Below, piece by piece: positions 5,199 through 33,624 of a stretch of DNA of 64,000 nt (its first letter is position 1; every line of letters begins with the position of its first letter). Under the pieces are notes generated by a model. That model did not search any database. It was not told the DNA's origin and was given only the letters and a program-made list of their open reading frames with translations. The position numbers were made by a program, and so were the translations under genes. The stretch is from Thalia democratica (Eukaryota): positions 8,122,001 through 8,186,000 of the forward strand of contig OZ241832.1 in NCBI GenBank assembly GCA_965202585.1, in the 5' to 3' direction.

Positions 5199-5336
5199 CA
5201 AACTAATTATTACGTCACAGGGCCTGGTGATCTGCTACATGGTGTTTTACACGCCAGTGGTGCACAACTTATTATCATTTCGTCACAATACAAACTAATT
5301 ATTTTGTCACAGTCCAAACTAATTATTACGTCACAG
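5199..5336 (+). repeat. Duplicated acceptor plus first ~44 nt of the SLC6 TM12 exon, with repeated caaactaattatt..gtcacag units
   Basis: caaactaattattacgtcacag|ggcctggt(g/c)atctgctacatgg occurs with acceptors ending at 5220 and 5336; a further cag acceptor ends at 5312. Confidence 0.85.
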
Positions 5337-5516
5337 GGCCTGGTCATCTGCTACATGGCGTTTTACACGCCAGTGGTGTACGACGGCGTGATCTACCCGT
5401 CGTGGGCTGAAGTGATTGGGTGGATGTCCTGTTTCAGCTCCATCGTCCTCATACCCGCCACCGCCTTCTACCAGGTTTACTACCACGAGAGGGCGCAAGG
5501 GTTATCGTTCGCACAG
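5337..5516 (+). CDS. SLC6 transporter exon (EL6-TM12)
   Basis: tcacag|...|gttcgt, 180 nt, GLVICYMAFYTPVVYDGVIYPSWAEVIGWMSCFSSIVLIP matches Y.YP.WA..IGW. Confidence 0.92.
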
Positions 5517-6695
5517 GTTCGTAACCGCATGTTATTTTCATGTTTGATTTGTTTTCAATAAAAACTTGTAAAAACTTTTTTAAGGGACTGAAAAAGTTAA
5601 ACAGCTAATCAATGCAAACTACATTATATTTTAAACCAGAAGCCACAAGGCTTCACACAATGTACTAACCGTGGGCAAACCACTTTATATAAAACAATAA
5701 AACAGAGCTATGTGTGTGTGTACAATAAGCTAGAACTTCCTGTATAGTCGATTATCTGTTACATTCTCCTTACACTTGCTTTAGCTGCCTTTACATCGAG
5801 CTTGAAGTTTAAATAAAGCTATTAGTTGAAATTAGTGAGCTGTTGCCTAAGCTTAAAAATAAGGTTTTTCAATTAGTAGTTTAAGGCAAGGTTCAGCCTG
5901 TATGCTTTTCGTATTTATTCAACTTTTTCTTTACTTTAAAAATAACTTAAGTCAATGTGCAAAAAAAAAGTTTTTGAATATTTTTTTAGGCATCGCATTA
6001 TGTGCCGGGTGCACGGCAATTCAGGTATAGACAATTTATATTCATAGAAAAATGTTTGAGGGACATTATCTCAAAAAATTTATTTAAAAAAAATAAAAAT
6101 AGGTGTGTAGGTGTTATTAAAAACTACAAGCCATTTATTATCTTTTGAGGTATGGCTAAAATATGTTATAAAATACAGTTATTTTAGTAATTTTAAATTT
6201 TTTTTTTTAATATTTAAAATTCTGCAAATAATAAAAAATGGCTTGTAGGTCCATTAACTTTTACTGATAATTACGACATTTGTACACAGACTCGAATTTA
6301 GAGAACATATTGTCCCATAATGTTAAGCTTTAAACTGAAAAAGTCTATTTTTTACTACCCAAGTTTCTATTCTTTATAATACTCTGACAAACACAGTTGA
6401 CAAAAAATTAGCTTGTTCATAAATTTTATTAGAAAACTGATAAGCTTATCTAAATCTAATTAAAAAACAATAAAAATAACATAAATATATTTTTTTAGTA
6501 TAGGGAACTTCAGTTCAAGTTTAGATTCTTTGTAGCACTTCAACAAACATAACAGAGTTGAAAAATTAAATTTGTATATTATTTCAATCAGAAGGCCCAT
6601 AAACTCAGCCTAAATATATACTTTTCAAAAACCAATTAATAAATAGAAAATATATTAAAAATAACTTATAAATAAAAAATTATATTTTTTACCAG

Positions 6696-11004: not shown

Positions 11005-11882
11005 GTTTTAACCATATTTATTTGATTCACGCACTATGATCTTAGAAGCATTAAAAACTTGTTTGTAAATATGTTTTTTGTAAATATTGCTATATCAACA
11101 TTAAAAAGTATTATAATTTATCTATTATCTTATGTTATGCTAACAAGCAGGTGCATTTTAAACTTAACTTTAAGACTTTATTTTTTATACTTTATGAAGT
11201 TTCAAAGGTTTCTGTTATAAAAGAAAATTAAAATTTGTTTTAAAATTACCAATTTCAAGGTCAAAGTTACACTTTTTTACTTGCGTTTTTTTGATAGTAA
11301 ACTGTTCACTTTAAAAGTACAAATAGAACTCTCTCAAATAAAAGTAGTTTAGATTAATGCATAAAATAAACACCATAGGTTAGGTTTAAAGTTATGAACA
11401 GCTTTTTTTAATTTTTGTTCATATCTATTCTTAAAAATTTTAAACTTTGTCGACTTTTAATCATTGCTTTCCTTTTTAAAAGTTTTTAACTCGCACCCAT
11501 AATATGCTCAGGTGTTATAGTTTATTGAACGACAAAAAAAGACGCTCAAAATATTTGGTTCTAGGACCTTACGCATGAAGAACCTTCGGTTATCGAGTCG
11601 CACACCACGGGTACCTTTTAAGGTCTTGTCCAGGACTTGCTTTAGCAAACCGGTATAATTTTATTTCTGCTATCCTAACCACCAAACAAAAAAAAAACAA
11701 GTAAAAAATTCTAAACTGTGCAAAAATGTCACAAAATCAAAACATTAAACAAAATTTTTCCAAAAACTTTTAATTATGACGTAGGCTTCTGTTTTTGGAT
11801 GCTTTTCATAAAAAACCAAAGAAAACCAAACCAATACTTTTCGTTTTCCGTTTTTGTTTTTTTTTGTCCAACATCAAAAATA

Positions 11883-13261
11883 ATGTCGGATCGAGCTCAA
11901 AATAGCAGTGACAATGCTGGTGATGTCATAGTTCCTGCTAGTAATAACAACGCTCACGGTAATAACGAAGACGTGCCTGCTATTAATAACAATGAGAATG
12001 ACAATGTTAATGCTAGTGAAAATGTTTCTGCCAGTGAAAATGCTACTGTTAATGCCAATAATCCTGCGAACGGTGGCAACGATTCCGAGATCATCGAAAG
12101 GACGTGCTCCGTGGACAACTGGGAGGAGCTGATGAGGAGCTACAAGACGTACTTCAGCGAGCTCAAGCTGGAAAACGAAGCCGAACCGACCGAAGAACAA
12201 GCCAAACGCAAGTTCGAGGAGCTCGCGGGGAGGCTGGAGTGTGACAAGAACGACAACGCGCTCTTCGACTCCCTGAAGGACCACGGCTTTCACAGCTGGC
12301 TCAGAGTGCTGCTCGGGCTGGAGGTGGTGCTGGATCTGCTGCGGAGGAACCTGCAAAAGGCCGCCGACCGGCTGTACGAGGAGTTCGCGAGAAAAAAAGA
12401 CGCGAACGCGAACGATGGAGGAGCTGTGGCAAAAGTTGGTGCGAACGTGAAGGGTGGTGGAAGTGCAGGCGGAAGTGGTGGAAAAAAAGCAAATGAGGTT
12501 ATATGTTGCACGAATGCTTTTGACAGCCTCGATGGCGACGAAATAGAACTCATCGACGGCATATACAACGAGTACAGAAGAGCGAAGAGAAATAGAACAG
12601 ACGCCAAAAACGCATGCAAGGAATTTTTCATTGATAACGTATCTGAAAAGTTAGAGGGTTCCTTGAATAACAATAGATTCGAATTTGAGTACACTGAACA
12701 ACAACGAGAAGATTTAAAAAGAAGCGGTAAAACTGTTACCAAAAAAACAAAACCAATGTTAGGAGATGATTTTATAAACAAATATAAAAATGTCACTCAA
12801 ATTCTGAGGTGGTTTTTAAAAAGGCTGGACAAAACGTCCACTCACGAGAAAAAAGAAATAAATGCAGATACCACCAGAGAAGAATACTTTCTCATCGCCT
12901 TGTCCGTGTTCCGGTTTTTAAACTGCGAGAACTGGAAAAGAAAAGGCGCAGGCAACCAGGAAGGGTTAGAGGCGGACAGCGGCAGCACGGGCTACAAGCT
13001 CAGGGTCGCCATAGTTTTCATGGGCTGGGGCCAGGAGTACGTCAAGTTCAGAGGCGACAGTGTCGGTTGTTACGACATGACCCCGTTGGCGAAGATGGCG
13101 GTGTCCGTGCGCAAGGATTTCCTTTTCAACGACAAGTACAAGACTCTGCAGGAGTCGGCCGATCCGAAGAAGACGGACAAGCCAGAAGAGAAGACTTTTA
13201 ACTTCTGGGTGAAGATGGTAAAGGATGTGAGAAACAAAATTCTCCACAGCGCAACTGACAG
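11883..13261 (+). CDS. Novel multidomain protein, exon 1: Asn-rich N-terminus plus CXorf38/DUF4559/DZIP3-like HEPN domain
   Basis: Open frame from ATG 11883; motifs SWLRVLLGLEVV, VAIVFMGWG, YDMTPLAKM and VKDVRNKILHS parallel CXorf38 NWLKAGHCL, VAKAFMPRG, DAVALL and IKCRNEIMHS. Donor either AG|gttgga (13261, phase 2) or AT|gtaaat (13277, phase 0). Confidence 0.75.
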
Positions 13262-13532
13262 GTTGGAATTTAGATATGTAAATATATATGATTTATTTTA
13301 TTTAAATATATTTTTACGTTGTATATTACTGCTTTTTTTTTATTGTAGTGTTTTCGTAATTTGTTTTATATTTTAATTTGTTTACATTTTGTTTTCTATT
13401 TATAACTTAAAAATAAAAGTTAGAACATCTTTTTTTGTCGTTCAAACTTCTGTACCATCCCGTTGTTTCCGACACTCTTTCCTACTTTCTAATTGTCTAA
13501 TTGTTAAAGCAAAATTTTTACAAAACGTTTAG

Positions 13533-14888
13533 GACGAAAAGCGAACTGAAAACCGCTTGCTTCTACGTATTGCACAGCTTTGTTCGACACTTGCGGGAGA
13601 ATAGGTTTTTTGAAATGTACGAGAAAAATGGTAATGGAGGCGGGAACGACGAAAATAACGGCGGGAATGGCAATGATGGCGCGGAAAGCAGTAATAGCAG
13701 GAAAGGCAATGATGGCGGGAGAGACCGCAAAGGCGGGAATGGCAATGATGACGACAGTGACGATGGTGGTAGCGGTAGAGGCGGGAACGGTGCAAGTACA
13801 ATACAAACCGCCGTTGTCGGCAAAAATGTTAACGGTAAAACCGAAAGTGAGGTAAGACGAAAAGAGCGAGAAAAAAAAAAGGCGCAGATGAGGATCTACG
13901 CGGAGGTGACGAAGAGCCTGAGGTTCGTGGAGACGGCGGACGTGAGGCTTCTGTTCGAGGGTGAGGTGACCAGGTCCACTCTCAACCTCTACCTGAACAA
14001 AAAGAAAAAGAAGGAGGGCGGGGCGGGCTCGAGCGGAGGTGGTAGGGGAGGAAGCAAAAGTGTGACAGCAGCAGCGCAGCAAGGAAGTAGCAACGCGCAA
14101 GGAGCAAATGAAGGCAATGGTGTGGCGAGCACCAGCAAAACTGTGTCAGCAGAAGCGCAGCAAGGAAGTAGCAACGCGCAAGGAGCAAATGAAGGCAATG
14201 ATGTGGCGAGCACCAGCAAAACTGTGACAAGAGAAGCGCAGCAAGGAAGTAGCAACGCGCAAGGAGCAAATGAAGGCAATGATGTGGCGAGCACCAGCAA
14301 AACTGTGACAAGAGAAGCGCAGCAAGGAAGTAGCAACGCGCAAGGAGCAAATGAAGGCAATGATGTGGCGAGCACCAGCAAAACTGTGCCAAGAGCAGCG
14401 CAGCAAGGAAGTAGCAACGCGCAAGGAGCAAATGAAGGCAATGATGTGGCGAGCACCAGCAAAACGGTGACAACAACAGCGCAGCAAGGAAGTAGCAACG
14501 CGCAAGGAGCAAATGAAGGCAATGATGTGGCGAGCACCAGCAAAACTGTGACAGCAGCAGCGCAGCAAGGAAGTAGCAACGCGCAAGGAGCAAATGAAGG
14601 CAATGATGTGGCGAGCACCAGCAAAACTGTGACAGCAGCAGCGCAGCAAGGAAGTAGCAACGCGCAAGGAGCAAATGAAGGCAATGATGTGGCGAGCACC
14701 AGCAAAACGGTGACAACAACAGCGCAGCAAGGAAGTAGCAACGCGCAAGGAGCAACAAAAGGAAAAAGTAATGGAAAGAATAAAAAAAAAAATAAAGATC
14801 AAGTGGAACTATCGGAGGAGTACAATAGCGCGAAAGGGCACAGAGCGCCCGTGAGGTTCAAGAAAATAGACGGCAATGACAAACTGCA
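13533..14888 (+). CDS. Novel multidomain protein, exon 2: G/N/D-rich linker, short helical segment, 27-aa repeat array
   Basis: Acceptor tttag| at 13532 (phase 2; alternative aaag| at 13509, phase 0), long open frame, perfect donor CA|gtgagt at 14889. Confidence 0.72.
14065..14755 (+). repeat. Coding tandem repeat, 81-bp / 27-aa unit, 8 full copies plus one partial
   Basis: AQQGSSNAQGANEGNDVASTSKTV+XXX units start every 81 nt from 14074 to 14722. Confidence 0.97.
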
Positions 14889-15157
14889 GTGAGTTAGATA
14901 GTTGAAATATTTTTTTCTTTGTAATGAGAGGCAGCTGTATGCTTTCATCTTGCAGTTTTAAATAAGTGCAGGCTTTATTTTAATACATTTTTATACCTAA
15001 GAAGTAGTCATAAACGCTTAATAATCACAAAGTTTGACCAAATCTTGGCACAAAACAAAAAACTTGAAGTTTTTTTCAAAAACTTTTCTTTACCGTCGTC
15101 AGTTTTCGCAAGCAAATTTTTTAATCGAGTTTGCTTCAACCACTTTTAAAATTGCAG

Positions 15158-16169
15158 GCTGAAGCCAGTGTTTTTGCCTGCGATGAAAACTCCAGGTGGA
15201 AAAGCACAGATGAAGTCCAAACTGCAAAACTGGAATAAAACTGATCAAAGTAACTTTCACGTCCTTGAAGAATTGCTGAAAATTAAAGACAAAAAAAAAC
15301 GTGTCGCGAAGGTTTTCAAGTTTTTCGAGAACGAGATCGATTGCGTCCAGCAGGAGTTCGAAGAATTCTCGGACAGCTGGAAGGTGGTAAACGATTACCT
15401 GAAGCCGAAGAAGAGGCAAACGCTGAGGGAAATCAACGAGAACTGGACGTTCTACAGGGAAGAGAAGCTGAAGGAAGCGGAAAAAGAAAAAGAAAAAGCA
15501 GAAAAAAAAGAAAAAGAAAAAGCAGAAAAAAAAGAAAAAGAAAAAGAGCAGAAGAAGAATGCGGGAGCAACAGCAAATAACAACCAGGGTCAACAACAAC
15601 TACAAACACAAGGATCAAACCAACAACAGCAAGGACCATCTGAACAACAAAAAGGAACAACAAATCAAGGCCAACCACCAAAACTAGGATCAGAAGAGCA
15701 ACAAAAACCGTTAAAACAACAACAACAACAAAAACAATCAGGATTACAACAACAANNNNNNNNNNNNNNNNNNNNNNNNNNNNNNNNNNNNNNNNNNNNN
15801 NNNNNNNNNNNNNNNNNNNNNNNNNNNNNNNNNNNNNNNNNNNNNNNNNNNNNNNNNNNNNNNNNNNNNNNNNNNNNNNNNNNNNNNNNNNAAGAACAGC
15901 TGTCGGCAATGCGAGGCAATGAGATCGGCAATGCGGGAAGCCAGAGCCGAGACGATGCTGGAAAAATTCTCGAGACCGCCAACGAAACCGCTGCAACCAC
16001 GATCGAACAGGTAAATGTTCTCGGGAGCTTGTCAGACGACAACGGGAACAGAAGCGCCGAAGGTGCAGGTCTCGATACAGCCATCCCTGCGCTAACACAA
16101 GAAGTGCAATCCGATAATGACGGCAATGACGAAGGTGGGGAGATAAGTGTAAGCATAACAGAAAATTAA
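15158..16169 (+). CDS. Novel multidomain protein, exon 3: helical segment, KE- and Q-rich tracts (spans assembly gap)
   Basis: attgcag| acceptor at 15157 is phase 2, matching the 14888 donor; frame stays open to TAA at 16167-16169, but continuity across the N-run is unverified. Confidence 0.72.
15756..15891. other. Assembly gap (136 N) inside a CAA/Gln-rich tract
   Basis: Run of N. Confidence 0.99.
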
Positions 16170-18529: not shown

Positions 18530-19496
18530 AGAATGACACCGTTGATGGCGAACCGAAGAAAACTCTGCAGTCGACCAAAATGAAACGGCCTGACGCTTTC
18601 AACTTGCCATTTTTGAACTTGCTAGTATTACCCTGCAGCGCAGGCTCGCTTTCGAGCTCAACAAAGTTTACATTCTCACACCTAACAAGCCGCAAGTTGT
18701 AAAGAGAGTCCGAGCCTTGTCAGCAAGCAAACAACGCCCAACTTAATTTTTTAAACTCTTTTTTTTTTGTCAAACTTCAACAAATATTTTTCACGAACCC
18801 GGCAAAATTCTACCGGGTATTTCCAGTGGCAAATACGAAACCTTAAAACGACAGAAAGGTCGGAAGGTAGAAGAAACGGGAGTTTTACGACCTAAAAGGA
18901 TTTGTCGACTCTAATAACCTTAGGCAAAGCGGCGCGAAAGTCTTCGAGTTTTTCAAGAGATCGATTGCGTCCAGCAGAAGTTCGATGAGTTCTCGGACAG
19001 CTGGAAGGTGGTAAACGATTACCTGAAGCCGAAGAAGAGGCAAACGCTGAGGGAAATCAACGAGAACTGGACGTTCTACAGGGGAAAGAAGCAGAAGGAA
19101 GCTGGAAATAACGGAAATCAAGGAGACCAGAAGTATAAAATCAACAAAAACCAGGAGTAAGAACATCAAAACCATAAACGAAACAACTACAAATACAAGG
19201 ATTAAAACAATGATATACATCACAAAACCAACGATATCAATCACAAAGTGAAGGAATTTCACAAAAGCGAACTCAAAATCTACTCCAAAAACTAGGATCC
19301 AAACACCAGCAAGCAGAAAAATCAAAACAAATGAAATCACAATCGTATCTACAATGCAATAACACTAAGAATAACTGTAAAAAAATGTAAACAATAATGT
19401 CGTCAATTGTCCTAAAAACAGTGCGGTCCTGAAAATAACAATGACACCCGGAACGAGATCACTTGGCTTTAAAGCCGATTTCAACGGGAGGGAAGG
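18530..19496 (+). pseudogene. Relic paralogue of exon 3 of the 11883-16169 gene, interrupted by the LTR array
   Basis: About 18957-19105 is nearly identical to about 15338-15480 (EIDCVQQ...NWTFYR) with a small indel and frameshift; followed by a degenerate Q/N-rich tract; similar sequence resumes after 32718. Confidence 0.75.
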
Positions 19497-20800
19497 TGTA
19501 GGACACTTATGCAATATCTTATTTTGCCTTGTGTCCAAATTTTGATAACTTAAAGAAATTAATGTTAATCACTTGATATTATATTTTTCCTTTAAAAAAA
19601 ACAACAAATAAATATAGTAAAACTAATTCCCAAAAAAAACTATTTTTCACAAACAAAATAAGTGCTAGTTAAAATGATTTTTGTCTTTGATTTCTTGATT
19701 GAACTGGAAATAGCTTGTTTATGGGTGTGGCTAAGGGAAAATGAGAGAATCAAATGATAGATCAAGTGATCTACAGTTCAAAGTCCAGGAAAATGAGAGA
19801 ATCAAATGAGAGATCGCGTGATTATTGAAAATTCTAGAAAAAGAATCGAAAAACTATAAATACGCCCAATCAGAGCGTGAAGCAGGGCATTTACCTCGAA
19901 ACAAGCACGAAGCGACACTCTGCTGCTCGAAAATTTAAGCGTTAGCCGCCATCTTGGAAAAGCTAGATGACACCCGAGAAAACCTTCTTATACAACAACG
20001 TCGACGGGGCGAACAACTCGATTTGAGTTGTTAACGTGCCATAATCATAAGCCTACGCATACTGTAGCAGACAACTTCTTTGGATCAATTTGAACACTGA
20101 ATTCCACGATTGAGTCCACAGCGTTCAAAGAAAGAAACTTGAACATTCATCTTATTGAGCAAGCCCACACAGATTGTGGCGTCAACCTTAGCTACACTTC
20201 TACGAACAAGTTGTTTTCGTACTTTTAAATAATTCTGTCGTAATATTTATACATATTTATATTATCGTATCTATTTACTATTGTACTTGTATTGTAATAT
20301 TTATACATATTTATATCATCGTGCCTATTTATATTGTATTTTATCGCCACGCTCCGATTACGGGAAGGAAACGGAAGAAGATCAAGCCACGTACATCAAG
20401 ATTCTGTAAACGAGACGGACCAACGTCGAGTGCCAGAAACTGAGCGACCGGAGACCAGTGACACGTCTCCAGTGACACGTCAAGGAGGGAATCCAGAGCA
20501 CGTTTTCCTTCTAATTGTTAACTTTAAGTGTTTAGACTTATTGTGAGCTGTCATTGCGTTTATTTGTACATAATAAAACAACATTACTTAGTTTTATTAT
20601 ATTTAGTTATATAAATTATATAGTTATGTCCTTAAAACCCCTAAAAAAGGCATTAGTCTTGAAAGTGCCACGCACACAAACGTGCACCGAAATGAGTTGT
20701 TCCGAGACTACTGCTAACCTGGAATCTGATGAGATTGTCGAGCCTGAGACCGAGGCAATTTCGAAGGAAATCAGTGAGGCTACAAGTCCGGGTAACAATA
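19497..20800 (+). repeat. LTR 1 (1304 bp)
   Basis: Same sequence at 25454-26757 and 31411-32714 as far as I can read; contains TATAAAT, internal direct repeats and AATAAA (20572). Confidence 0.85.
19855..19956 (+). promoter_or_regulatory. Putative LTR promoter: TATA box and YY1-like motif
   Basis: TATAAAT at 19855-19861, GCCGCCATCTTG at 19945-19956, and a duplicated ggaaaatgagagaatcaaatga upstream; repeated in each LTR. Confidence 0.5.
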
Positions 20801-23262
20801 ATGGCGTCCTCCGCAGCAACCATCTGCCAACCACTGAAGACAACACTAAAAAAATAAACGAATTAACTAAACTAGTAGAAAATAGTAACAAACTAATAGA
20901 AGATAGATTTAATACTATTTTAAAAACAATTTCTTTACAGAATTCTCAATCAATCAACACCCCTGCAAGAAGTGTGGTAAGTTCAGTTAATTGTTTTAAT
21001 TCACATATAAACTTGACAGACTCGCCCTCAGCCAGTATATATATGATGACCAAAACAACGGCTGCCAACAATCCTACGTTCCTTCAAGACTCCCTAAACA
21101 CAAGAACATCACAAATATCCAGTTATCAAGTCACAGCTGTAACACAAACACTCCCTACTACATCAATGAGTTCAACAAATTCATCGTTAGACAGTTTTTC
21201 ACGACCATATTCCCATCAAAAAAAACTAAATTCTAACCTAAAGTTTGATCAATCAAATGAAAAAAAATTAAGTCACTTTTACGGCAGTAGTTCAAATATC
21301 GAGCAGCTTAAACGACAGATCGATATTCTACAAAATAAAGTGAACAAAACTCCCAATTGTTATACAGATTCGAATCAGACTAATGGCAATCATATCTCTT
21401 TCAATCAAGAATCTTCGCCCGAGAATCAAAACTTCCACAAAGCAACAAATACAAGGCGTTTTCCAGAGCGAATGTTTAGGAAAATTAAAGGAAAAAATCC
21501 GAGAGAGGAGTTCAAATTGTTTGAGCTTCAGTGTAAAAGCCAGGGCATTTTCGATGATACAACTCAGTTTGAAATCATAATTAGAATATGGCCAATTAAT
21601 GATATACTTTACTATGTAAAAATTGGTAAACCATCTAGCTATGTCTGTTTCAAACAAGAAATCTTAAGCATGACACCATGCTTACCGGATATACACAAAC
21701 CTCCACCTATTTGGAGTCATACCCCAACTTTTAAAGACATTCATCAGTTGGTATCGAAAAGTCTTACTTGCTCGCCAGATGACCTCTACAAACATCTTAC
21801 TATTAGTTATAGTCCCAAATGGGCGAGTAAAATTCTAATAAAAGACCTTGAACTTCCTATCAAGAAGTTTAAGAACCGTCTTATGTGGATTCTCGAACAA
21901 GGCCCAACTGATTTGAAAATGAGTTATTATAGTAAAAAATCAAATAACCAATATAAGTTGAATAATAAATCTAAAAGGACATTTCATCAAAACCGAAATG
22001 AAAATTATTCGCAACCTAATCAAAACATAAACAACTACTCAAAAGACTATAGACAACATCAAAGTAATTTTAGTAATAAAAAACTTAACAGATGTCGCTA
22101 TCATGTTCGTTTTGGTGAGAAAGCTAAAAATTGTGAAGGCTCGCAATGTAAAATGTACAAAAAATTTGTAGAAAATAAAATAAAATATTTTAAGCAAAAA
22201 TCAACAATGGTAAAAAAAGAACTATTTATCGAAGAAAGGTTGAAAAGAGGAAAATTGAAGTGCACATGTGAAAATAAATCAATAAGAATCAAAGAAGCAA
22301 GTTCGTGCTCAACCTATAAAACACTTAACGAAAAACTTAAACAAAAGTCAATTGAACCAAAAAGAAAATATAGCAAATTTCGAGAAAATGAAGTACTCTG
22401 TGAAACAAAGTCAAATATAAGTACCAAACTACTATTTATTACAGATAAATATAATAAAATACCTTATTTGTTTGATATCAATGCACAACATTTGATTATT
22501 TCTAAGGGATTAATTAGTTCATATGAAGAAGATGATTTAGTACCTGAAATTTGGAACGTCTGGGGAAATGATATGAAAGCTCTAGGATATACAACTCTAA
22601 AGGTCAACATTGGTTTACAACAAAGTTTACCTCACAAGTTTTATGTAATAGAATCAAACAACCCTTTTGCTATTCTTGGCTCAAATTTTATAGTAAAGAG
22701 AAATTTAACAATCAATGCAAAGGAAAAAACGATAACACAAACAGAAACAGGAGTTAAACTTAAACTCGAACTGTCAGATCCTTCTCGTAAAAAAACCATT
22801 AGAAAAGAAGTAAAAAATTATTTAGAAACTTTTCCCGTAATCGCAAAAGAATCAAGTAACAGAGAAAAACCACAACATAACCATGTTCTTGATATGAAAC
22901 TCAAAAACGAAGTCTTGCCTCGTCATAAAAAAGCTATAGCACCGATTGCAATAATATCAAAAACAAAAGAAAACATCTTCAACAAGTTGTCAAAAGGAAG
23001 CATTCCAAAAACAATTGATAATGATAAAAACAACCTCCCAATATCATTTTTACCAACCGTCAAAAAGTGTGTAAACAAAACAATTAAATTAACTAAAGCT
23101 GTAATTTTGTTTTCTAAAAAGTGGAACAGTACTCAGAAAGTAATTTCTTTACATAGTAATCGATCTCTTAGTTGTTTAATAGAAACAAAGAAAATTACAA
23201 GAGACAACTTTTATCTCCAACAAAAAAATGACCTTAAAGACTACACGCATCTCGTCACTTAA
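20626..23262 (+). CDS. Gag-protease-like polyprotein (878 aa from the first ATG), no RT/RNase H/integrase
   Basis: Gag-like F.LFELQCKSQGIFDDTTQFEII; CRYHVRFGEKAKNCEGSQC (CX2HX9CX4C); retropepsin-like LLFITDK...YLFDINA...ILGSNF; then a linker resembling the pre-RT region and a stop. Confidence 0.8.
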   Translation: MSLKPLKKALVLKVPRTQTCTEMSCSETTANLESDEIVEPETEAISKEISEATSPGNNNGVLRSNHLPTTEDNTKKINELTKLVENSNKLIEDRFNTILKTISLQNSQSINTPARSVVSSVNCFNSHINLTDSPSASIYMMTKTTAANNPTFLQDSLNTRTSQISSYQVTAVTQTLPTTSMSSTNSSLDSFSRPYSHQKKLNSNLKFDQSNEKKLSHFYGSSSNIEQLKRQIDILQNKVNKTPNCYTDSNQTNGNHISFNQESSPENQNFHKATNTRRFPERMFRKIKGKNPREEFKLFELQCKSQGIFDDTTQFEIIIRIWPINDILYYVKIGKPSSYVCFKQEILSMTPCLPDIHKPPPIWSHTPTFKDIHQLVSKSLTCSPDDLYKHLTISYSPKWASKILIKDLELPIKKFKNRLMWILEQGPTDLKMSYYSKKSNNQYKLNNKSKRTFHQNRNENYSQPNQNINNYSKDYRQHQSNFSNKKLNRCRYHVRFGEKAKNCEGSQCKMYKKFVENKIKYFKQKSTMVKKELFIEERLKRGKLKCTCENKSIRIKEASSCSTYKTLNEKLKQKSIEPKRKYSKFRENEVLCETKSNISTKLLFITDKYNKIPYLFDINAQHLIISKGLISSYEEDDLVPEIWNVWGNDMKALGYTTLKVNIGLQQSLPHKFYVIESNNPFAILGSNFIVKRNLTINAKEKTITQTETGVKLKLELSDPSRKKTIRKEVKNYLETFPVIAKESSNREKPQHNHVLDMKLKNEVLPRHKKAIAPIAIISKTKENIFNKLSKGSIPKTIDNDKNNLPISFLPTVKKCVNKTIKLTKAVILFSKKWNSTQKVISLHSNRSLSCLIETKKITRDNFYLQQKNDLKDYTHLVT
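20802..20816 (+). other. Putative primer-binding site
   Basis: TGGCGTCCTCCGCAG begins one base after the LTR end (also at 26759); cognate tRNA not assigned. Confidence 0.5.
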
Positions 23263-25453
23263 CGATATTAAGACAACATAAGTTCTGTCAACTGGAATAG
23301 TTTCTTAATTCTGTCACATCTACGTTCATTTTTTTAAGTTTCTTTTATCAGTGAATAACGAGCTATAAACTCATTCTATTTATTTTTATATATTTTATAT
23401 ATTTATATATGTAATGTATACATGTGTATATACTAATTTTATTCTTTACTAACATGAGACTTAAAACAAAACACACTTTTTTTCCCTCTTTCTAACAATT
23501 TTTTTTTCGCTTACACAATAACCAAACTAAATACTGCAAGTTTACAATTTAATAATTAAATTATCTGTTCTTGCAATTTTACAAATTTATTTTTTTTTTC
23601 TCGCGCAGCTGTACGATAAAAAAAAGAGAATAAATGATTCTTCTGTTTGTTTTAAATTAAATTCCGGAAGCGTTCAAATTATAATTTTTCTAAATCATTG
23701 ACATTTTTTTTCCGGTATGAATTTGACCCCAGATTAATAAGAATTCAATTCCAAATAAGCACTTGGTCTTTTTCTCTTTATAACTTTAAGAATTTAATTA
23801 TTTAAATCGTGCTCTAAAAAGAGTGCGTAAACTCACTAACCTGAAACCAAAAATTAATAATTATATACTTATTGAACTTATATGTTGGAAGCAAAAAAAA
23901 AAAAAAATTTTATATTACAAGCTGGTCTATTTTAAAGTAAAAATCTTTGAAAAGAAAACATTGTTTTTCTTGAACATCTATTCAAAAAAAATTAAACTGC
24001 TCAAATCTTCTCCCATTCAAATGATTTTTTTGCCGACTAGTACAATCAACTAAACTGAATGCAGCAAACTTACTGAACTCTAAGATGATAATGGTTTGCC
24101 TTTTTACAACTTTAACTGTTAGTCACTCTCGTACAGTTGCACGTGAAGTTTGCAGCAATGAAGTTCGTATATAACAGGTGATATTTTGTTTTCAACCCTC
24201 AATTTTTTACGACACACGTGTTATTAAAGTTCGAAATATGCGCAGTCAAAATTAACTCCCAAGAGTTTAACTATTGCGCTAAGCTAACTTAAATAACTTT
24301 ATAAAAAGCTTCTGACAATCAAATTAATTTCCCGTATTTTTGTTTTATCACTTTTGCAGTTCACAAAAAAACTTGAAGTATAAATAACTTCCAGCTGTTA
24401 AGCTAACTTTTTTTGCCACTAAACAAACTTATTAAAATGTTCCTTCAATCAAATTGCTTAATCTAAATAGTTTGAAATGTCGCTTTTCCACCTATCTCTA
24501 ATTTCAAGTTATTCACTGACAGTGTGGAAGTGAGTTTATAGCATGTTAGTTTTTCAAAAATATGTATATTTTTCGAAAAAAAAAATTAAAACTAAAATAA
24601 AAACAAAATTATAAAACAAAAAAAAAACACATTCTATTAATTTATTTATCTATATATATTTTTTTTTCTCTTGTTTTCTTTGATCTTCATAAACTTTTAT
24701 TAATATCTTATATCAATTAAGTAAAAGTCGTTTTTTTTCTCTTCTAACCTTAAAAAATTAAAAAATCAAACCAATTATCAATTTAGACTTTTTCGAATTC
24801 TTACTTCAGATGTTTTTAATTTTTTTTTAATTTAACTAATTCATTCATAAAAAATATTATAACTTTGATATGATAACGTTTCATACTAATTAGAATTAAC
24901 TTTTTTTAATTTTTTTCTTTGGATAAGTACATGTCTTGTATACGGATAATTAGGTAAGAGTTAAAAACAAATTCTAGTTTTCTTTTGACATTGTTTTTAC
25001 TATTGTCGTTGTAAACCTGTATTTTTTTTCTTGCTTTATTCTTACGCGATGTCTTGGATCTTGATATTTAAGTGTTTGAATTTTCTAATTATTGGTTTTT
25101 CATTAACTATTAATATTTATTTTTTTTGAACTCTAAAAATTAGAAATATCGTTAGACTTTTTATTTACACTCTATACTAAACTGTAATTTTCATTTTTAT
25201 GTGTCGATGAATTTATGTATAATTAATTTTTGGATTGGTTAAAACTTCCGATTTATTTTTTTTTCTTCTAAACATGATATCGCTTTATTTTTTTTTATTT
25301 CACAAGCTGTTTCAAACTTGGAATTTATAAGTTAATATTCGTCTACCTAATAATTTTTTTCTTATCCATTCATTTTTTATTTTTCTACAATTTAAAAACA
25401 AAAAAAAAAAAATTTTTGGTAAAAAAAATAAAAATAAAATAGACAATAGTCGA

Positions 25454-26757
25454 TGTAGGACACTTATGCAATATCTTATTTTGCCTTGTGTCCAAATTTT
25501 GATAACTTAAAGAAATTAATGTTAATCACTTGATATTATATTTTTCCTTTAAAAAAAACAACAAATAAATATAGTAAAACTAATTCCCAAAAAAAACTAT
25601 TTTTCACAAACAAAATAAGTGCTAGTTAAAATGATTTTTGTCTTTGATTTCTTGATTGAACTGGAAATAGCTTGTTTATGGGTGTGGCTAAGGGAAAATG
25701 AGAGAATCAAATGATAGATCAAGTGATCTACAGTTCAAAGTCCAGGAAAATGAGAGAATCAAATGAGAGATCGCGTGATTATTGAAAATTCTAGAAAAAG
25801 AATCGAAAAACTATAAATACGCCCAATCAGAGCGTGAAGCAGGGCATTTACCTCGAAACAAGCACGAAGCGACACTCTGCTGCTCGAAAATTTAAGCGTT
25901 AGCCGCCATCTTGGAAAAGCTAGATGACACCCGAGAAAACCTTCTTATACAACAACGTCGACGGGGCGAACAACTCGATTTGAGTTGTTAACGTGCCATA
26001 ATCATAAGCCTACGCATACTGTAGCAGACAACTTCTTTGGATCAATTTGAACACTGAATTCCACGATTGAGTCCACAGCGTTCAAAGAAAGAAACTTGAA
26101 CATTCATCTTATTGAGCAAGCCCACACAGATTGTGGCGTCAACCTTAGCTACACTTCTACGAACAAGTTGTTTTCGTACTTTTAAATAATTCTGTCGTAA
26201 TATTTATACATATTTATATTATCGTATCTATTTACTATTGTACTTGTATTGTAATATTTATACATATTTATATCATCGTGCCTATTTATATTGTATTTTA
26301 TCGCCACGCTCCGATTACGGGAAGGAAACGGAAGAAGATCAAGCCACGTACATCAAGATTCTGTAAACGAGACGGACCAACGTCGAGTGCCAGAAACTGA
26401 GCGACCGGAGACCAGTGACACGTCTCCAGTGACACGTCAAGGAGGGAATCCAGAGCACGTTTTCCTTCTAATTGTTAACTTTAAGTGTTTAGACTTATTG
26501 TGAGCTGTCATTGCGTTTATTTGTACATAATAAAACAACATTACTTAGTTTTATTATATTTAGTTATATAAATTATATAGTTATGTCCTTAAAACCCCTA
26601 AAAAAGGCATTAGTCTTGAAAGTGCCACGCACACAAACGTGCACCGAAATGAGTTGTTCCGAGACTACTGCTAACCTGGAATCTGATGAGATTGTCGAGC
26701 CTGAGACCGAGGCAATTTCGAAGGAAATCAGTGAGGCTACAAGTCCGGGTAACAATA
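25454..26757 (+). repeat. LTR 2 (shared central LTR)
   Basis: Copy of 19497-20800 at +5957. Confidence 0.85.
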
Positions 26758-29219
26758 ATGGCGTCCTCCGCAGCAACCATCTGCCAACCACTGAAGACAA
26801 CACTAAAAAAATAAACGAATTAACTAAACTAGTAGAAAATAGTAACAAACTAATAGAAGATAGATTTAATACTATTTTAAAAACAATTTCTTTACAGAAT
26901 TCTCAATCAATCAACACCCCTGCAAGAAGTGTGGTAAGTTCAGTTAATTGTTTTAATTCACATATAAACTTGACAGACTCGCCCTCAGCCAGTATATATA
27001 TGATGACCAAAACAACGGCTGCCAACAATCCTACGTTCCTTCAAGACTCCCTAAACACAAGAACATCACAAATATCCAGTTATCAAGTCACAGCTGTAAC
27101 ACAAACACTCCCTACTACATCAATGAGTTCAACAAATTCATCGTTAGACAGTTTTTCACGACCATATTCCCATCAAAAAAAACTAAATTCTAACCTAAAG
27201 TTTGATCAATCAAATGAAAAAAAATTAAGTCACTTTTACGGCAGTAATTCAAATATCGAGCAGCTTAAACGACAGATCGATATTCTACAAAATAAAGTGA
27301 ACAAAACTCCCAATTGTTATACAGATTCGAATCAGACTAATGGCAATCATATCTCTTTCAATCAAGAATCTTCGCCCGAGAATCAAAACTTCCACAAAGC
27401 AACAAATACAAGGCGTTTTCCAGAGCGAATGTTTAGGAAAATTAAAGGAAAAAATCCGAGAGAGGAGTTCAAATTGTTTGAGCTTCAGTGTAAAAGCCAG
27501 GGCATTTTCGATGATACAACTCAGTTTGAAATCATAATTAGAATATGGCCAATTAATGATATACTTTACTATGTAAAAATTGGTAAACCATCTAGCTATG
27601 TCTGTTTCAAACAAGAAATCTTAAGCATGACACCATGCTTACCGGATATACACAAACCTCCACCTATTTGGAGTCATACCCCAACTTTTAAAGACATTCA
27701 TCAGTTGGTATCGAAAAGTCTTACTTGCTCGCCAGATGACCTCTACAAACATCTTACTATTAGTTATAGTCCCAAATGGGCGAGTAAAATTCTAATAAAA
27801 GACCTTGAACTTCCTATCAAGAAGTTTAAGAACCGTCTTATGTGGATTCTCGAACAAGGCCCAACTGATTTGAAAATGAGTTATTATAGTAAAAAATCAA
27901 ATAACCAATATAAGTTGAATAATAAATCTAAAAGGACATTTCATCAAAACCGAAATGAAAATTATTCGCAACCTAATCAAAACATAAACAACTACTCAAA
28001 AGACTATAGACAACATCAAAGTAATTTTAGTAATAAAAAACTTAACAGATGTCGCTATCATGTTCGTTTTGGTGAGAAAGCTAAAAATTGTGAAGGCTCG
28101 CAATGTAAAATGTACAAAAAATTTGTAGAAAATAAAATAAAATATTTTAAGCAAAAATCAACAATGGTAAAAAAAGAACTATTTATCGAAGAAAGGTTGA
28201 AAAGAGGAAAATTGAAGTGCACATGTGAAAATAAATCAATAAGAATCAAAGAAGCAAGTTCGTGCTCAACCTATAAAACACTTAACGAAAAACTTAAACA
28301 AAAGTCAATTGAACCAAAAAGAAAATATAGCAAATTTCGAGAAAATGAAGTACTCTGTGAAACAAAGTCAAATATAAGTACCAAACTACTATTTATTACA
28401 GATAAATATAATAAAATACCTTATTTGTTTGATATCAATGCACAACATTTGATTATTTCTAAGGGATTAATTAGTTCATATGAAGAAGATGATTTAGTAC
28501 CTGAAATTTGGAACGTCTGGGGAAATGATATGAAAGCTCTAGGATATACAACTCTAAAGGTCAACATTGGTTTACAACAAAGTTTACCTCACAAGTTTTA
28601 TGTAATAGAATCAAACAACCCTTTTGCTATTCTTGGCTCAAATTTTATAGTAAAGAGAAATTTAACAATCAATGCAAAGGAAAAAACGATAACACAAACA
28701 GAAACAGGAGTTAAACTTAAACTCGAACTGTCAGATCCTTCTCGTAAAAAAACCATTAGAAAAGAAGTAAAAAATTATTTAGAAACTTTTCCCGTAATCG
28801 CAAAAGAATCAAGTAACAGAGAAAAACCACAACATAACCATGTTCTTGATATGAAACTCAAAAACGAAGTCTTGCCTCGTCATAAAAAAGCTATAGCACC
28901 GATTGCAATAATATCAAAAACAAAAGAAAACATCTTCAACAAGTTGTCAAAAGGAAGCATTCCAAAAACAATTGATAATGATAAAAACAACCTCCCAATA
29001 TCATTTTTACCAACCGTCAAAAAGTGTGTAAACAAAACAATTAAATTAACTAAAGCTGTAATTTTGTTTTCTAAAAAGTGGAACAGTACTCAGAAAGTAA
29101 TTTCTTTACATAGTAATCGATCTCTTAGTTGTTTAATAGAAACAAAGAAAATTACAAGAGACAACTTTTATCTCCAACAAAAAAATGACCTTAAAGACTA
29201 CACGCATCTCGTCACTTAA
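26583..29219 (+). CDS. Second copy of the Gag-protease-like ORF
   Basis: Same as 20626-23262 except S to N (G21290 vs A27247). Confidence 0.8.
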   Translation: MSLKPLKKALVLKVPRTQTCTEMSCSETTANLESDEIVEPETEAISKEISEATSPGNNNGVLRSNHLPTTEDNTKKINELTKLVENSNKLIEDRFNTILKTISLQNSQSINTPARSVVSSVNCFNSHINLTDSPSASIYMMTKTTAANNPTFLQDSLNTRTSQISSYQVTAVTQTLPTTSMSSTNSSLDSFSRPYSHQKKLNSNLKFDQSNEKKLSHFYGSNSNIEQLKRQIDILQNKVNKTPNCYTDSNQTNGNHISFNQESSPENQNFHKATNTRRFPERMFRKIKGKNPREEFKLFELQCKSQGIFDDTTQFEIIIRIWPINDILYYVKIGKPSSYVCFKQEILSMTPCLPDIHKPPPIWSHTPTFKDIHQLVSKSLTCSPDDLYKHLTISYSPKWASKILIKDLELPIKKFKNRLMWILEQGPTDLKMSYYSKKSNNQYKLNNKSKRTFHQNRNENYSQPNQNINNYSKDYRQHQSNFSNKKLNRCRYHVRFGEKAKNCEGSQCKMYKKFVENKIKYFKQKSTMVKKELFIEERLKRGKLKCTCENKSIRIKEASSCSTYKTLNEKLKQKSIEPKRKYSKFRENEVLCETKSNISTKLLFITDKYNKIPYLFDINAQHLIISKGLISSYEEDDLVPEIWNVWGNDMKALGYTTLKVNIGLQQSLPHKFYVIESNNPFAILGSNFIVKRNLTINAKEKTITQTETGVKLKLELSDPSRKKTIRKEVKNYLETFPVIAKESSNREKPQHNHVLDMKLKNEVLPRHKKAIAPIAIISKTKENIFNKLSKGSIPKTIDNDKNNLPISFLPTVKKCVNKTIKLTKAVILFSKKWNSTQKVISLHSNRSLSCLIETKKITRDNFYLQQKNDLKDYTHLVT

Positions 29220-31410
29220 CGATATTAAGACAACATAAGTTCTGTCAACTGGAATAGTTTCTTAATTCTGTCACATCTACGTTCATTTTTTTAAGTTTCT
29301 TTTATCAGTGAATAACGAGCTATAAACTCATTCTATTTATTTTTATATATTTTATATATTTATATATGTAATGTATACATGTGTATATACTAATTTTATT
29401 CTTTACTAACATGAGACTTAAAACAAAACACACTTTTTTTCCCTCTTTCTAACAATTTTTTTTTCGCTTACACAATAACCAAACTAAATACTGCAAGTTT
29501 ACAATTTAATAATTAAATTATCTGTTCTTGCAATTTTACAAATTTATTTTTTTTTTCTCGCGCAGCTGTACGATAAAAAAAAGAGAATAAATGATTCTTC
29601 TGTTTGTTTTAAATTAAATTCCGGAAGCGTTCAAATTATAATTTTTCTAAATCATTGACATTTTTTTTCCGGTATGAATTTGACCCCAGATTAATAAGAA
29701 TTCAATTCCAAATAAGCACTTGGTCTTTTTCTCTTTATAACTTTAAGAATTTAATTATTTAAATCGTGCTCTAAAAAGAGTGCGTAAACTCACTAACCTG
29801 AAACCAAAAATTAATAATTATATACTTATTGAACTTATATGTTGGAAGCAAAAAAAAAAAAAAATTTTATATTACAAGCTGGTCTATTTTAAAGTAAAAA
29901 TCTTTGAAAAGAAAACATTGTTTTTCTTGAACATCTATTCAAAAAAAATTAAACTGCTCAAATCTTCTCCCATTCAAATGATTTTTTTGCCGACTAGTAC
30001 AATCAACTAAACTGAATGCAGCAAACTTACTGAACTCTAAGATGATAATGGTTTGCCTTTTTACAACTTTAACTGTTAGTCACTCTCGTACAGTTGCACG
30101 TGAAGTTTGCAGCAATGAAGTTCGTATATAACAGGTGATATTTTGTTTTCAACCCTCAATTTTTTACGACACACGTGTTATTAAAGTTCGAAATATGCGC
30201 AGTCAAAATTAACTCCCAAGAGTTTAACTATTGCGCTAAGCTAACTTAAATAACTTTATAAAAAGCTTCTGACAATCAAATTAATTTCCCGTATTTTTGT
30301 TTTATCACTTTTGCAGTTCACAAAAAAACTTGAAGTATAAATAACTTCCAGCTGTTAAGCTAACTTTTTTTGCCACTAAACAAACTTATTAAAATGTTCC
30401 TTCAATCAAATTGCTTAATCTAAATAGTTTGAAATGTCGCTTTTCCACCTATCTCTAATTTCAAGTTATTCACTGACAGTGTGGAAGTGAGTTTATAGCA
30501 TGTTAGTTTTTCAAAAATATGTATATTTTTCGAAAAAAAAAATTAAAACTAAAATAAAAACAAAATTATAAAACAAAAAAAAAACACATTCTATTAATTT
30601 ATTTATCTATATATATTTTTTTTTCTCTTGTTTTCTTTGATCTTCATAAACTTTTATTAATATCTTATATCAATTAAGTAAAAGTCGTTTTTTTTCTCTT
30701 CTAACCTTAAAAAATTAAAAAATCAAACCAATTATCAATTTAGACTTTTTCGAATTCTTACTTCAGATGTTTTTAATTTTTTTTTAATTTAACTAATTCA
30801 TTCATAAAAAATATTATAACTTTGATATGATAACGTTTCATACTAATTAGAATTAACTTTTTTTAATTTTTTTCTTTGGATAAGTACATGTCTTGTATAC
30901 GGATAATTAGGTAAGAGTTAAAAACAAATTCTAGTTTTCTTTTGACATTGTTTTTACTATTGTCGTTGTAAACCTGTATTTTTTTTCTTGCTTTATTCTT
31001 ACGCGATGTCTTGGATCTTGATATTTAAGTGTTTGAATTTTCTAATTATTGGTTTTTCATTAACTATTAATATTTATTTTTTTTGAACTCTAAAAATTAG
31101 AAATATCGTTAGACTTTTTATTTACACTCTATACTAAACTGTAATTTTCATTTTTATGTGTCGATGAATTTATGTATAATTAATTTTTGGATTGGTTAAA
31201 ACTTCCGATTTATTTTTTTTTCTTCTAAACATGATATCGCTTTATTTTTTTTTATTTCACAAGCTGTTTCAAACTTGGAATTTATAAGTTAATATTCGTC
31301 TACCTAATAATTTTTTTCTTATCCATTCATTTTTTATTTTTCTACAATTTAAAAACAAAAAAAAAAAAATTTTTGGTAAAAAAAAGAAAAATAAAATAGA
31401 CAATAGTCGA

Positions 31411-32714
31411 TGTAGGACACTTATGCAATATCTTATTTTGCCTTGTGTCCAAATTTTGATAACTTAAAGAAATTAATGTTAATCACTTGATATTATATTT
31501 TTCCTTTAAAAAAAACAACAAATAAATATAGTAAAACTAATTCCCAAAAAAAACTATTTTTCACAAACAAAATAAGTGCTAGTTAAAATGATTTTTGTCT
31601 TTGATTTCTTGATTGAACTGGAAATAGCTTGTTTATGGGTGTGGCTAAGGGAAAATGAGAGAATCAAATGATAGATCAAGTGATCTACAGTTCAAAGTCC
31701 AGGAAAATGAGAGAATCAAATGAGAGATCGCGTGATTATTGAAAATTCTAGAAAAAGAATCGAAAAACTATAAATACGCCCAATCAGAGCGTGAAGCAGG
31801 GCATTTACCTCGAAACAAGCACGAAGCGACACTCTGCTGCTCGAAAATTTAAGCGTTAGCCGCCATCTTGGAAAAGCTAGATGACACCCGAGAAAACCTT
31901 CTTATACAACAACGTCGACGGGGCGAACAACTCGATTTGAGTTGTTAACGTGCCATAATCATAAGCCTACGCATACTGTAGCAGACAACTTCTTTGGATC
32001 AATTTGAACACTGAATTCCACGATTGAGTCCACAGCGTTCAAAGAAAGAAACTTGAACATTCATCTTATTGAGCAAGCCCACACAGATTGTGGCGTCAAC
32101 CTTAGCTACACTTCTACGAACAAGTTGTTTTCGTACTTTTAAATAATTCTGTCGTAATATTTATACATATTTATATTATCGTATCTATTTACTATTGTAC
32201 TTGTATTGTAATATTTATACATATTTATATCATCGTGCCTATTTATATTGTATTTTATCGCCACGCTCCGATTACGGGAAGGAAACGGAAGAAGATCAAG
32301 CCACGTACATCAAGATTCTGTAAACGAGACGGACCAACGTCGAGTGCCAGAAACTGAGCGACCGGAGACCAGTGACACGTCTCCAGTGACACGTCAAGGA
32401 GGGAATCCAGAGCACGTTTTCCTTCTAATTGTTAACTTTAAGTGTTTAGACTTATTGTGAGCTGTCATTGCGTTTATTTGTACATAATAAAACAACATTA
32501 CTTAGTTTTATTATATTTAGTTATATAAATTATATAGTTATGTCCTTAAAACCCCTAAAAAAGGCATTAGTCTTGAAAGTGCCACGCACACAAACGTGCA
32601 CCGAAATGAGTTGTTCCGAGACTACTGCTAACCTGGAATCTGATGAGATTGTCGAGCCTGAGACCGAGGCAATTTCGAAGGAAATCAGTGAGGCTACAAG
32701 TCCGGGTAACAATA
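31411..32714 (+). repeat. LTR 3 (3' LTR)
   Basis: Identity with the other LTRs ends at ...GGTAACAATA, followed by AAGG. Confidence 0.85.
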
Positions 32715-33624
32715 AAGGGAACAGCGGAAGGTGAAAGCATGACGATACTCATCAAGGTAAACTTCCAGAAGTTCATATAAGCGTTAGGGGGCGTTCGAAC
32801 TCCGTAAACCTTTTTATAAATAAAATATTAGCTCTTTTAAATAAAACATTAATTGAACTGAGGAACAAAGTAACATGTGCATTGAGCTAAATTAGTCATT
32901 ACAAGTTTGACAACAAGTTCCATTTTATAATTTAAAACTTTACTTGCAATACAAATATTTTTAACACGTTTTAGCAAAAGAATGTTTTTTTTCTCTAATT
33001 TTGTTTGTAAAAGATAAAAAAAGAACGCTAAAGTTTTTTAAAATATTATTTTTAATCTGGTTTTGTTGAAATAGTTTAATGTTTGTATTTATGTCAAATT
33101 AAATTGGGATAATAAAGGTTTTTTTTTAATAAGCATGTGTCCTATTTTGCTCTAATATTATTACTTTGTGATTAATAAGCAGTTAATCAAAATATTAAAA
33201 GTAAAACTAAAAACAAGTTGTTATAAGACAAATACAAATTTTACCAGATTGTAAAATTACTTTCAGTGGTTTGGTTTTTGTGAAAAATGTAAAAGTTTGA
33301 AAATAAATTATTTTGATTAACATTGTTACTAACTGGTAAACTAAAAGTGAAAATAAAAGTATTAAACTTCAGAAAAGTTTTGAAGTTTTAGGATGTACTT
33401 TTTTAATTGTAAATATATATCTTGATGTGCAGTTACAGTACCCTATTTAAAGTAAATATATAAACTTATTTTGTTTTAGCTGTTTTTTAAAAATTATTTA
33501 TGTGTTGTGTGCTAAAAAATACAATGATAAAATAACATATTTTTTTCAATAAAAAACTTATTTACCTAATCTATTGTTCTTAAATTAGCAGATTTTAATG
33601 ATTAAAATGGCTATAAATTTTTGA

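Follow-up and report, generated by a model that had tools for sequence, protein, structure and literature searches.

A very young CsRn1-like LTR retrotransposon without pol in Thalia democratica keeps an open Gag reading frame

We analyzed a stretch of 64,000 nucleotides from the animal Thalia democratica (GenBank assembly GCA_965202585.1, contig OZ241832.1, positions 8,122,001 to 8,186,000 of the forward strand), in the following called the window, and describe an array of long terminal repeat (LTR) retrotransposon sequence on its plus strand at positions 19497-32714. Direct LTRs and a flanking target-site duplication, as the definition of an LTR retrotransposon demands, are both present. It represents a real, very young and structurally intact element of this kind which lacks pol. 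We consider it likely that it is a helper-dependent, non-autonomous derivative of a CsRn1-like Ty3/gypsy retrotransposon, with a Gag frame under selection, a recombinant 5′ module and a recently formed tandem structure.

The array has the order LTR-internal-LTR-internal-LTR and an exact period of 5957 bp. The three LTRs (LTR 1, 19497-20800; LTR 2, 25454-26757, common to both units; LTR 3, 31411-32714) are 1304 bp long each and do not differ at a single position when their sequences are compared. Their termini are TGTAGG...ACAATA, that is, the ends are of the type 5′-TGT...ATA-3′. The target-site duplication is the tetranucleotide AAGG, found directly 5′ of LTR 1 (19493-19496) and directly 3′ of LTR 3 (32715-32718). 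At the right boundary one nucleotide can be assigned to either side, since 20801 and 32715 are both A, and the duplication can thus also be read as AGG. Over the 4653 bp of the internal region exactly two substitutions separate unit 1 from unit 2 (internal region 26758-31410). One of them, G at 21290 and A at 27247, changes codon 222 of the large open reading frame (ORF) from AGT (Ser) to AAT (Asn); the other, T at 25429 and G at 31386, is situated in an A-rich stretch just 5′ of the LTR. A single LTR-internal-LTR copy has 7261 bp. A preliminary description of this DNA, made from the sequence alone, had proposed the same arrangement with a period of 5957 bp, near-identical LTRs, AAGG at the outer ends and two substitutions between the units. 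This was confirmed base for base; the LTRs are fully identical and there are no other substitutions. Neither a further copy of the element nor a solo LTR occurs within the 64-kb window, and the reconstructed empty site contains no ORF of more than 53 codons and no visibly disrupted coding exon.

Within the LTR we find TATAAA at 19855, AATAAA at 20572 and the ATG of the large ORF at 20626. We infer the partition of the LTR into U3, R and U5; the ATG would be placed in U5 if AATAAA is the polyadenylation signal. There are also short direct repeats inside the LTR, a unit of about 42 bp at 19739-19810, 5′ of TATAAA, and an AT-rich unit of about 56 bp at 20236-20320, which are possibly regulatory repeats. 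The ORF of unit 1 (20626-23262) comprises 878 codons and the stop codon and is coding from the ATG to position 23259; the copy in unit 2 has its codons at 26583-29216 and extends to 29219 with the stop. An open frame of 878 codons in each unit, as noted before, is indeed found. The ORF begins 175 nucleotides inside the LTR, and its first 58 codons are therefore encoded by the LTR. The remaining 3′ part of the internal region (23263-25453) is AT-rich and non-coding: the 2.2 kb of AT-rich DNA reported to follow the ORF amount to 2191 bp with 24% G+C and without any ORF of more than 76 codons. The A-rich stretch 5′ of the 3′ LTR could serve as plus-strand primer site.

The ORF belongs to a small and unannotated protein family. 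A profile of its Gag part matches only 42 proteins among 1.84 billion representatives, and none of those which were looked up has a name. A word search yielded P0001, a pol-less protein of 785 residues without any Pfam domain and 71% identical to the window ORF, and P0002, from a family in which the full-length proteins P0012 and P0016 have 1865 residues. By profile search we found a second complete lineage, P0018 with 1964 residues, and the fragment P0019. An exhaustive search also recovered fragments of the type of the window element, and via a cluster look-up it led to P0115, which represents a third pol-less lineage; this protein is 76.5% identical to the window ORF over residues 283-878 and stops at the same position. 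The proteins P0012, P0009 and P0002 contain the Pfam domains RVP, RVT_1, RT_RNaseH, Integrase_H2C2 and rve in the order of Ty3/gypsy elements. In P0012 a CHCC zinc knuckle at residue 465 is followed by the retropepsin motif DTG at 588, the YIDD motif of RVT_1 at 887, RNase H, the integrase with its H2C2 and core domains, and GPF at 1564. P0018 has precomputed hits to these same Pfam families, and its motifs DTG, YIDD and GPY are present in that order. Residues 1-800 of the window ORF are 53% identical to P0012 and 48% identical to P0018. An autonomous partner with similar LTR ends and a similar primer-binding site had been named as something to look for, and there is indeed a complete relative in which the LTR-encoded N-terminus and the codons of the primer-binding site are the same. 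Both P0012 and P0018 carry, at residues ~1640-1735 after the integrase, a second retropepsin-like domain with its own D-S-G and ILG-D-F motifs. This domain is about 32-37% identical to the protease-like region of the window ORF, and two protease domains are unusual for a Ty3/gypsy polyprotein.

About 15 of the 42 matches are ORFs of just 59-98 residues, which start with the LTR-encoded first ~58 residues and then continue with unrelated sequence. Because the ORF begins in the LTR, every 3′ or solo LTR will open a short ORF into its flank. The short ORFs are such 3′-LTR or solo-LTR junctions at different sites; they come from all lineages, and four are of the type shared by the window element and P0012. 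As they diverge into different flanks, the family must be multi-copy and dispersed in the sequenced material, which may include a sister species. In the window itself the ATG of LTR 3 at 32540 opens a 64-codon ORF (32540-32734) which stops 17 nucleotides into the host DNA and might give rise to chimeric transcripts that run towards the right flank.

The ORF is collinear with residues 1-780 of the complete polyproteins, and the part collinear with residues 1-570 of P0012 and P0018, upstream of their RVP domain, makes up Gag. The assignment is based on the position N-terminal to the protease in the Gag-Pol polyprotein and on a Cys/His knuckle. The most conserved part is the Gag core, the presumed capsid domain (residues 281-440; 21466-21945), which is predicted to be helical and is 73-91% identical to every lineage. 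At residues 490-508 (22093-22149) follows a zinc-knuckle-like CHCC motif of the nucleocapsid type, C-X2-H-X9-C-X4-C, and the same spacing is seen in P0001, P0004, P0005, P0012, P0018 and P0045 as well as in five distant Gag-only proteins. The RVP domain which Pfam recognizes in P0012 is homologous to the protease-like domain of the ORF (residues 598-715; 22417-22770). After that comes a stub of about 70 residues from the N-terminus of the reverse transcriptase (RT; residues ~745-815, 22858-23070), at which the homology to pol ends: the alignments stop at about residue 780 of P0012 and at residue 785 of P0018, the first residues of RVT_1. The last 63 residues (23071-23259) form a C-terminal tail which is conserved in the sister pol-less lineage P0115, with 84% identity as against 52% in the adjoining RT stub, and with the last ~50 residues nearly invariant. 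The tail has neither a Pfam match nor similarity to pol (tblastn, Pfam, hhalign). Its conservation may reflect a function of the protein or a signal in the RNA or DNA. We considered the tail as a remnant of the zinc-binding domain of the integrase and rejected this, as the similarity was 40% over 32 residues at E = 24, the MAFFT alignment was scattered and hhalign gave no confirmation. No credible Pfam match was obtained with the whole ORF, its pieces or the tail. A search of the PDB sequences with the ORF gave no match, and a search of the PDB with a profile of the whole family retrieved integrases only, which are due to the pol part of the relatives.

Beyond the RT stub nothing of pol is left. 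With P0012, P0016, P0009 and P0018 as queries, tblastn detected neither RT nor RNase H nor integrase in any frame of the element or of the entire window, and in the 3′ internal region the complete relatives did not reveal a remnant of pol even at E = 50. The absence of RT, RNase H and integrase reported in the preliminary description is thus borne out by Pfam and by tblastn, and the tblastn results also exclude a hidden pol part in a spliced or frameshifted frame. Without RT and integrase the element cannot reverse-transcribe or integrate by itself.

The same description spoke of an intact gag-protease, and this part of it does not hold. At the position of the active site (22474-22482) the window ORF reads D-I-N, as do P0001, P0005, P0006 and P0115, whereas P0012, P0018 and P0017 have D-T-G. 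The domain hence lacks the catalytic D-T/S-G motif by which a retropepsin is recognized. DIN replaces DTG in three pol-less lineages, and the Pfam signal for a retropepsin is gone, with zero matches of the domain in the window ORF even at E <= 10. The domain is 47-50% identical to the Pfam-positive RVP regions of P0012 and P0018, and hhalign gives a probability of 96%; the AlphaFold model is poor, with a predicted local distance difference test (pLDDT) score of 42. Judged from these comparisons, the protease-like domain is a retropepsin homologue without the catalytic motif.

Is the ORF merely not yet decayed, or is it maintained? Scans of metagenome and viral contigs yielded no DNA of the relatives, and all tests of selection and recombination were made at the protein level. 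We simulated neutral evolution by mutating the window ORF under an AT-biased model down to 71% protein identity in 300 replicates. On average about 21 stop codons accumulated and not one of the 300 frames stayed open. The three pol-less lineages, which are 71-77% identical and all have DIN, nevertheless each possess an open frame. The open frames at this divergence, together with the number of stops to be expected, indicate that the ORF is under selection. Along the protein, the identities between the window ORF and P0001 are 85% for the Gag core, 78% for the knuckle region and 79% for the protease-like domain, compared to 84, 81 and 84% between the complete proteins P0012 and P0018. In the comparison with P0115 conservation is lowest in the RT stub (52%). 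From these sequence comparisons we conclude that Gag and the protease-like domain appear to be under purifying selection, and so does the tail in the branch of the window element and P0115. The suggestion that we deal with an old non-autonomous Gypsy lineage with a selected ORF is thereby supported.

The ancestry of the element is mosaic. Against P0012 the window ORF is 83% identical over residues 1-60 and 80% over residues 61-120, against P0001 only 38% and 72%; from residue 121 onwards the identities are 61-85% to P0001 and 22-77% to P0012. Sites which discriminate between the two relatives favor P0012 over P0001 by 37 to 4 in residues 1-110, and in residues 111-780 they count 42 for P0012 and 204 for P0001 (Fisher p = 4e-20). 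Among quartet-informative sites, none group the window element with P0001 and six group it with P0012 in segment 1, the corresponding numbers for segment 2 being 129 and 2. In addition, a 21-bp tandem duplication (20864-20906, codons for SNKLIED) also occurs in P0012 and P0018; P0001 and P0019 lack it. In the 5′ segment the window element falls inside the clade of the complete elements and is nearer to P0012 than P0018 is. Because it is nested there, the conclusion of recombination does not depend on the history of P0001 itself. Thus, by sequence, the element is a recombinant in which U5, the primer-binding site and the first ~110 gag codons (codons 1-110, 20626-20955, the 5′ module that groups with the complete, autonomous-type relatives) appear to be of the helper type and the rest of the pol-less type.

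The exchanged module extends from the LTR-encoded N-terminus over the primer site to about 150 nucleotides past it; RT and integrase must recognize these parts. The candidate primer-binding site TGGCGTCCTCCGCAGC (20802-20817, plus strand) begins one nucleotide past the LTR and is itself translated as codons 59-64 of the ORF. The codons N-G-V-L, which cover its first 11 nucleotides, are invariant in all five lineages (5/5). Both the Rfam scan and the tRNA scan of the window were empty, and no tRNA gene is present. Mosaics of this type classically arise by template switching between co-packaged RNAs, which is also the most plausible route here; genomic gene conversion may have led to the same result.

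Judged by its motifs, the family is CsRn1-like. It stands near the CsRn1 clade of the Ty3/gypsy elements and is not a proven member. Hallmarks of the clade are a Gag with CHCC knuckle, a 4-bp target duplication, TGT...ATA or TGT...AAA ends, a tRNA-Trp primer site and the GPY/F motif (PMC2582038, PMC3630058). We compared the window element with the published descriptions of CsRn1, PwRn1, AgCR-1 to -14 and CsRn1_Cv1 (PMC2582038, PMC3630058). In common with these elements are the CHCC instead of a CCHC knuckle, the 4-bp duplication AAGG, the TGT...ATA ends of the LTRs and an invertebrate host; furthermore the complete relatives have gag and pol fused in one ORF and carry GPF (P0012) or GPY (P0018) at residue 1564. 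In contrast, the knuckle ends in C-X4-C and not in C-X3-C, and the signature C-X2-H-X9-C-X3-C is thus missed by one extra residue. The primer site TGGCGTCCTCCGC agrees at only about 7 of 11 positions with the published TGGTGA(G/C)CCCG(T/A) and is not that of the clade. The LTRs have 1304 bp compared to ~180-380 bp in the clade, the ORF starts within the LTR, the window element has no pol, and the complete relatives carry the second protease-like domain after the integrase.

We suggest that the element arose and persists in the following way. An ancestral deletion would have removed everything from just inside RT through the integrase. The element would be transcribed from its LTR, and its own Gag would package its own RNA and co-assemble with the Gag-Pol of a helper of the P0012/P0018 type, which would provide protease, RT and integrase. 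Inheritance through transposition could then explain why three or more pol-less lineages still have an open Gag frame. A helper-type 5′ module acquired via template switching would keep the parasite matched to the RT and integrase of the helper. The dead protease domain and the tail might act in assembly or docking and not in catalysis. Mobilization in trans, co-packaging and the role of Gag are conceived here as a model; what the sequences show is how the element is organized, that pol is missing, which proteins are homologous, the changed motif, the maintained ORF and the mosaic ancestry. Likewise, the continued mobility of the element, and capsid piracy or a restriction role for its Gag, both of which the preliminary description had brought forward, seem conceivable. 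Taken one step further, the pol-less lineage could be a parasite at the level of the capsid, in which Gag, the dead protease domain and the tail form a docking module while the front end is renewed from an active helper. Entry into the helper particles might, for example, be gained by pairing with the protease domain of the helper. We put this last proposal forward with reserve, as one possibility that is rather less probable than not.

Other explanations of the reading frame have to be weighed against a helper-dependent parasite with a selected Gag. That the element is autonomous after all, with pol provided from another frame, by splicing or by the AT-rich region, is hardly conceivable: the polyproteins of 1865 and 1964 residues match nothing past the RT stub in all frames up to E = 50, and the longest other ORF has 76 codons. 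The element might also be a passive, recent deletion derivative whose ORF is open through youth only and whose Gag decays neutrally. This copy is indeed very young, with identical LTRs, and the RT stub, 52% identical to P0115, is the least conserved part. Yet the pol-less state with DIN is found in three lineages which are only 71-77% identical and all open, none of the 300 simulated frames remained so, and the degree of conservation varies strongly along the protein, in parallel with that of the complete relatives; we regard passive decay as very improbable. More serious is the idea that Gag with the pseudoprotease is kept as an antagonist, which in a restriction-like manner or in competition would act dominant-negatively on the assembly of the helper capsid or on the protease dimer. 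Retropepsins act as dimers, and a dead subunit could interfere. The conservation of the motif-less domain almost to the degree of the complete relatives (79% versus 84%) and the extra conserved tail would suit such a function. The protein is, however, carried by a multi-copy mobile element whose LTRs are perfect and whose 5′ module matches the helper, and not by a fixed single-copy host gene, and blocking the sole source of RT and integrase would halt the spread of the element itself. We therefore think that antagonism is an improbable function, though a far less remote one than passive decay.

With just two substitutions over the 4653 bp of the internal region and fully identical LTRs, the three-LTR tandem would be of very recent origin. 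We suggest that a single insertion, which created the AAGG duplication, was followed by an unequal exchange between 5′ and 3′ LTR. Such an exchange would double the internal region and keep the outer duplication. The tandem could instead be an artefact of the assembly, in that the genome contains one copy of 7261 bp, or two alleles, which the assembler connected via the identical LTR. In that case the two substitutions would stem from heterozygosity, from dispersed copies that differ, or from errors of polishing. Three LTRs with zero differences and a mere two in 4653 bp do resemble a repeat-driven false duplication, one of the two differences falls in a homopolymer-rich A tract, and the family is multi-copy in public data. 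On the other hand, the joints contain neither a gap nor an N (all Ns of the window form a single run at 15756-15891), the outer target duplication is intact, and the lack of differences in the LTRs is compatible with the rate in the internal region (P = 0.33). Tandems with three LTRs which keep the duplication are also common in nature, as seen for 65 of the 97 tandem copies in sugar beet (PMC13570524). On balance we find an artefact unlikely, but of all the objections it is the one to be taken most seriously.

Besides the resemblance to a false duplication, some further observations weigh against a helper-dependent, CsRn1-like parasite with selected Gag. AlphaFold predicts residues 292-425 as helical within a model of residues 230-520 whose mean pLDDT is 32, so that the Gag fold is modeled with low confidence. 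The primer site TGGCGTCCTCC is unlike the tRNA-Trp site TGGTGA(G/C)CCCG of the CsRn1 clade. The A-rich stretch before the 3′ LTR (25400-25453) is interrupted by T and is not a clean polypurine tract. The 64-kb window does not contain a helper, that is, a copy of a complete relative. Finally, selection and recombination were deduced from proteins of metagenome contigs, possibly from a sister species.

Elements of this general kind are known chiefly from plants, where Gag-only or Gag/protease-only elements, three-LTR tandems and chimeras have all been described (PMC13570524, PMC9744471). The TR-GAG and GAG-PROT-only elements of Coffea, Arabidopsis, Triticeae and sugar beet likewise have LTRs, a primer site and an ORF for gag or for gag plus protease and lack RT, RNase H and integrase; they are presumed to be mobilized in trans, and three-LTR tandems and chimeric copies are frequent (PMC13570524). 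Of the 97 tandem copies of non-autonomous families in sugar beet, 65 contain exactly three LTRs and 73 have retained the target duplication, and the GAG/PROT families are above the size range proposed for TR-GAG elements as well (PMC13570524). The element described here differs in its animal host and in belonging to another clade of Ty3/gypsy, and with 7261 bp it is not small as TR-GAG elements are. It also has the conserved protease-like domain without catalytic motif, the conserved tail and an ORF which is maintained across deep lineages. The Angela sub-populations and Wilma, Sabrina and WHAM of wheat are comparable as long-lived parasite lineages which must share at least the LTR ends and the primer site with the helper (PMC9744471). 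For wheat, transfer of the LTR by template switching or gene conversion was proposed as a route by which partners are switched (PMC9744471). In contrast to the wheat partnerships, the transferred module is here mapped in coding sequence, with a break near codon 110, and the parasite keeps its own Gag. BARE2 is reportedly the reverse case, an element which has no Gag of its own and relies on that of BARE1. PEG10, Arc and Fv1 are fixed single-copy host genes derived from gag or gag-protease and are not flanked by LTRs. With these genes the element shares a Gag or Gag-protease frame retained for long without RT or integrase; it differs from them in that LTRs without any difference and a target duplication that is still fresh enclose the ORF, which is part of a family with many dispersed copies. 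Unusual in this animal, CsRn1-like element are thus the conserved protease domain without motif, the conserved tail, an ORF which starts in the LTR and runs through the primer site, and the mapped 5′ module of the helper type.

The remainder of the window is AT-rich animal DNA with an overall G+C content of ~29%. Upstream of the array three long ORFs (11718-16169, plus strand), which are G+C-richer, A-skewed and without Pfam matches, probably belong to one host gene. At about 14.1-14.8 kb within this region are roughly 10 tandem copies of a unit of ~25 residues (AQQGSSNAQGANEGN...TSKTV), and the sole run of Ns of the window mentioned above also falls into these ORFs. An ORF fragment at 5124-5558 (plus strand) matches the C-terminus of sodium:neurotransmitter symporters and is probably one exon of a transporter gene. 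On the minus strand, 52285-54717 is an intronless ORF of 811 codons for a PRMT9-like arginine methyltransferase. Its best named matches are insect proteins with 28-29% identity, and one metagenome protein is 94% identical. This close counterpart suggests that a sister species is represented in the public data.

To our knowledge, non-autonomous LTR elements which keep gag are well documented in plants and scarcely so in animals. Elsewhere one can seldom tell a gag frame that is needed from one that has merely not decayed so far; here the frame, the motif-less protease domain and the tail are kept across deep lineages. Since the family is unannotated, it would be missed by transposon annotation which relies on domains. 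Several questions become testable with it, namely whether such a parasite needs its own Gag in cis, what role the dead protease domain plays and how parasite and helper are matched. If the docking module fed by a renewed front end should prove true, the combination of a modular pseudo-enzyme and a swapped front end would be a strategy not described for animal LTR retrotransposons.

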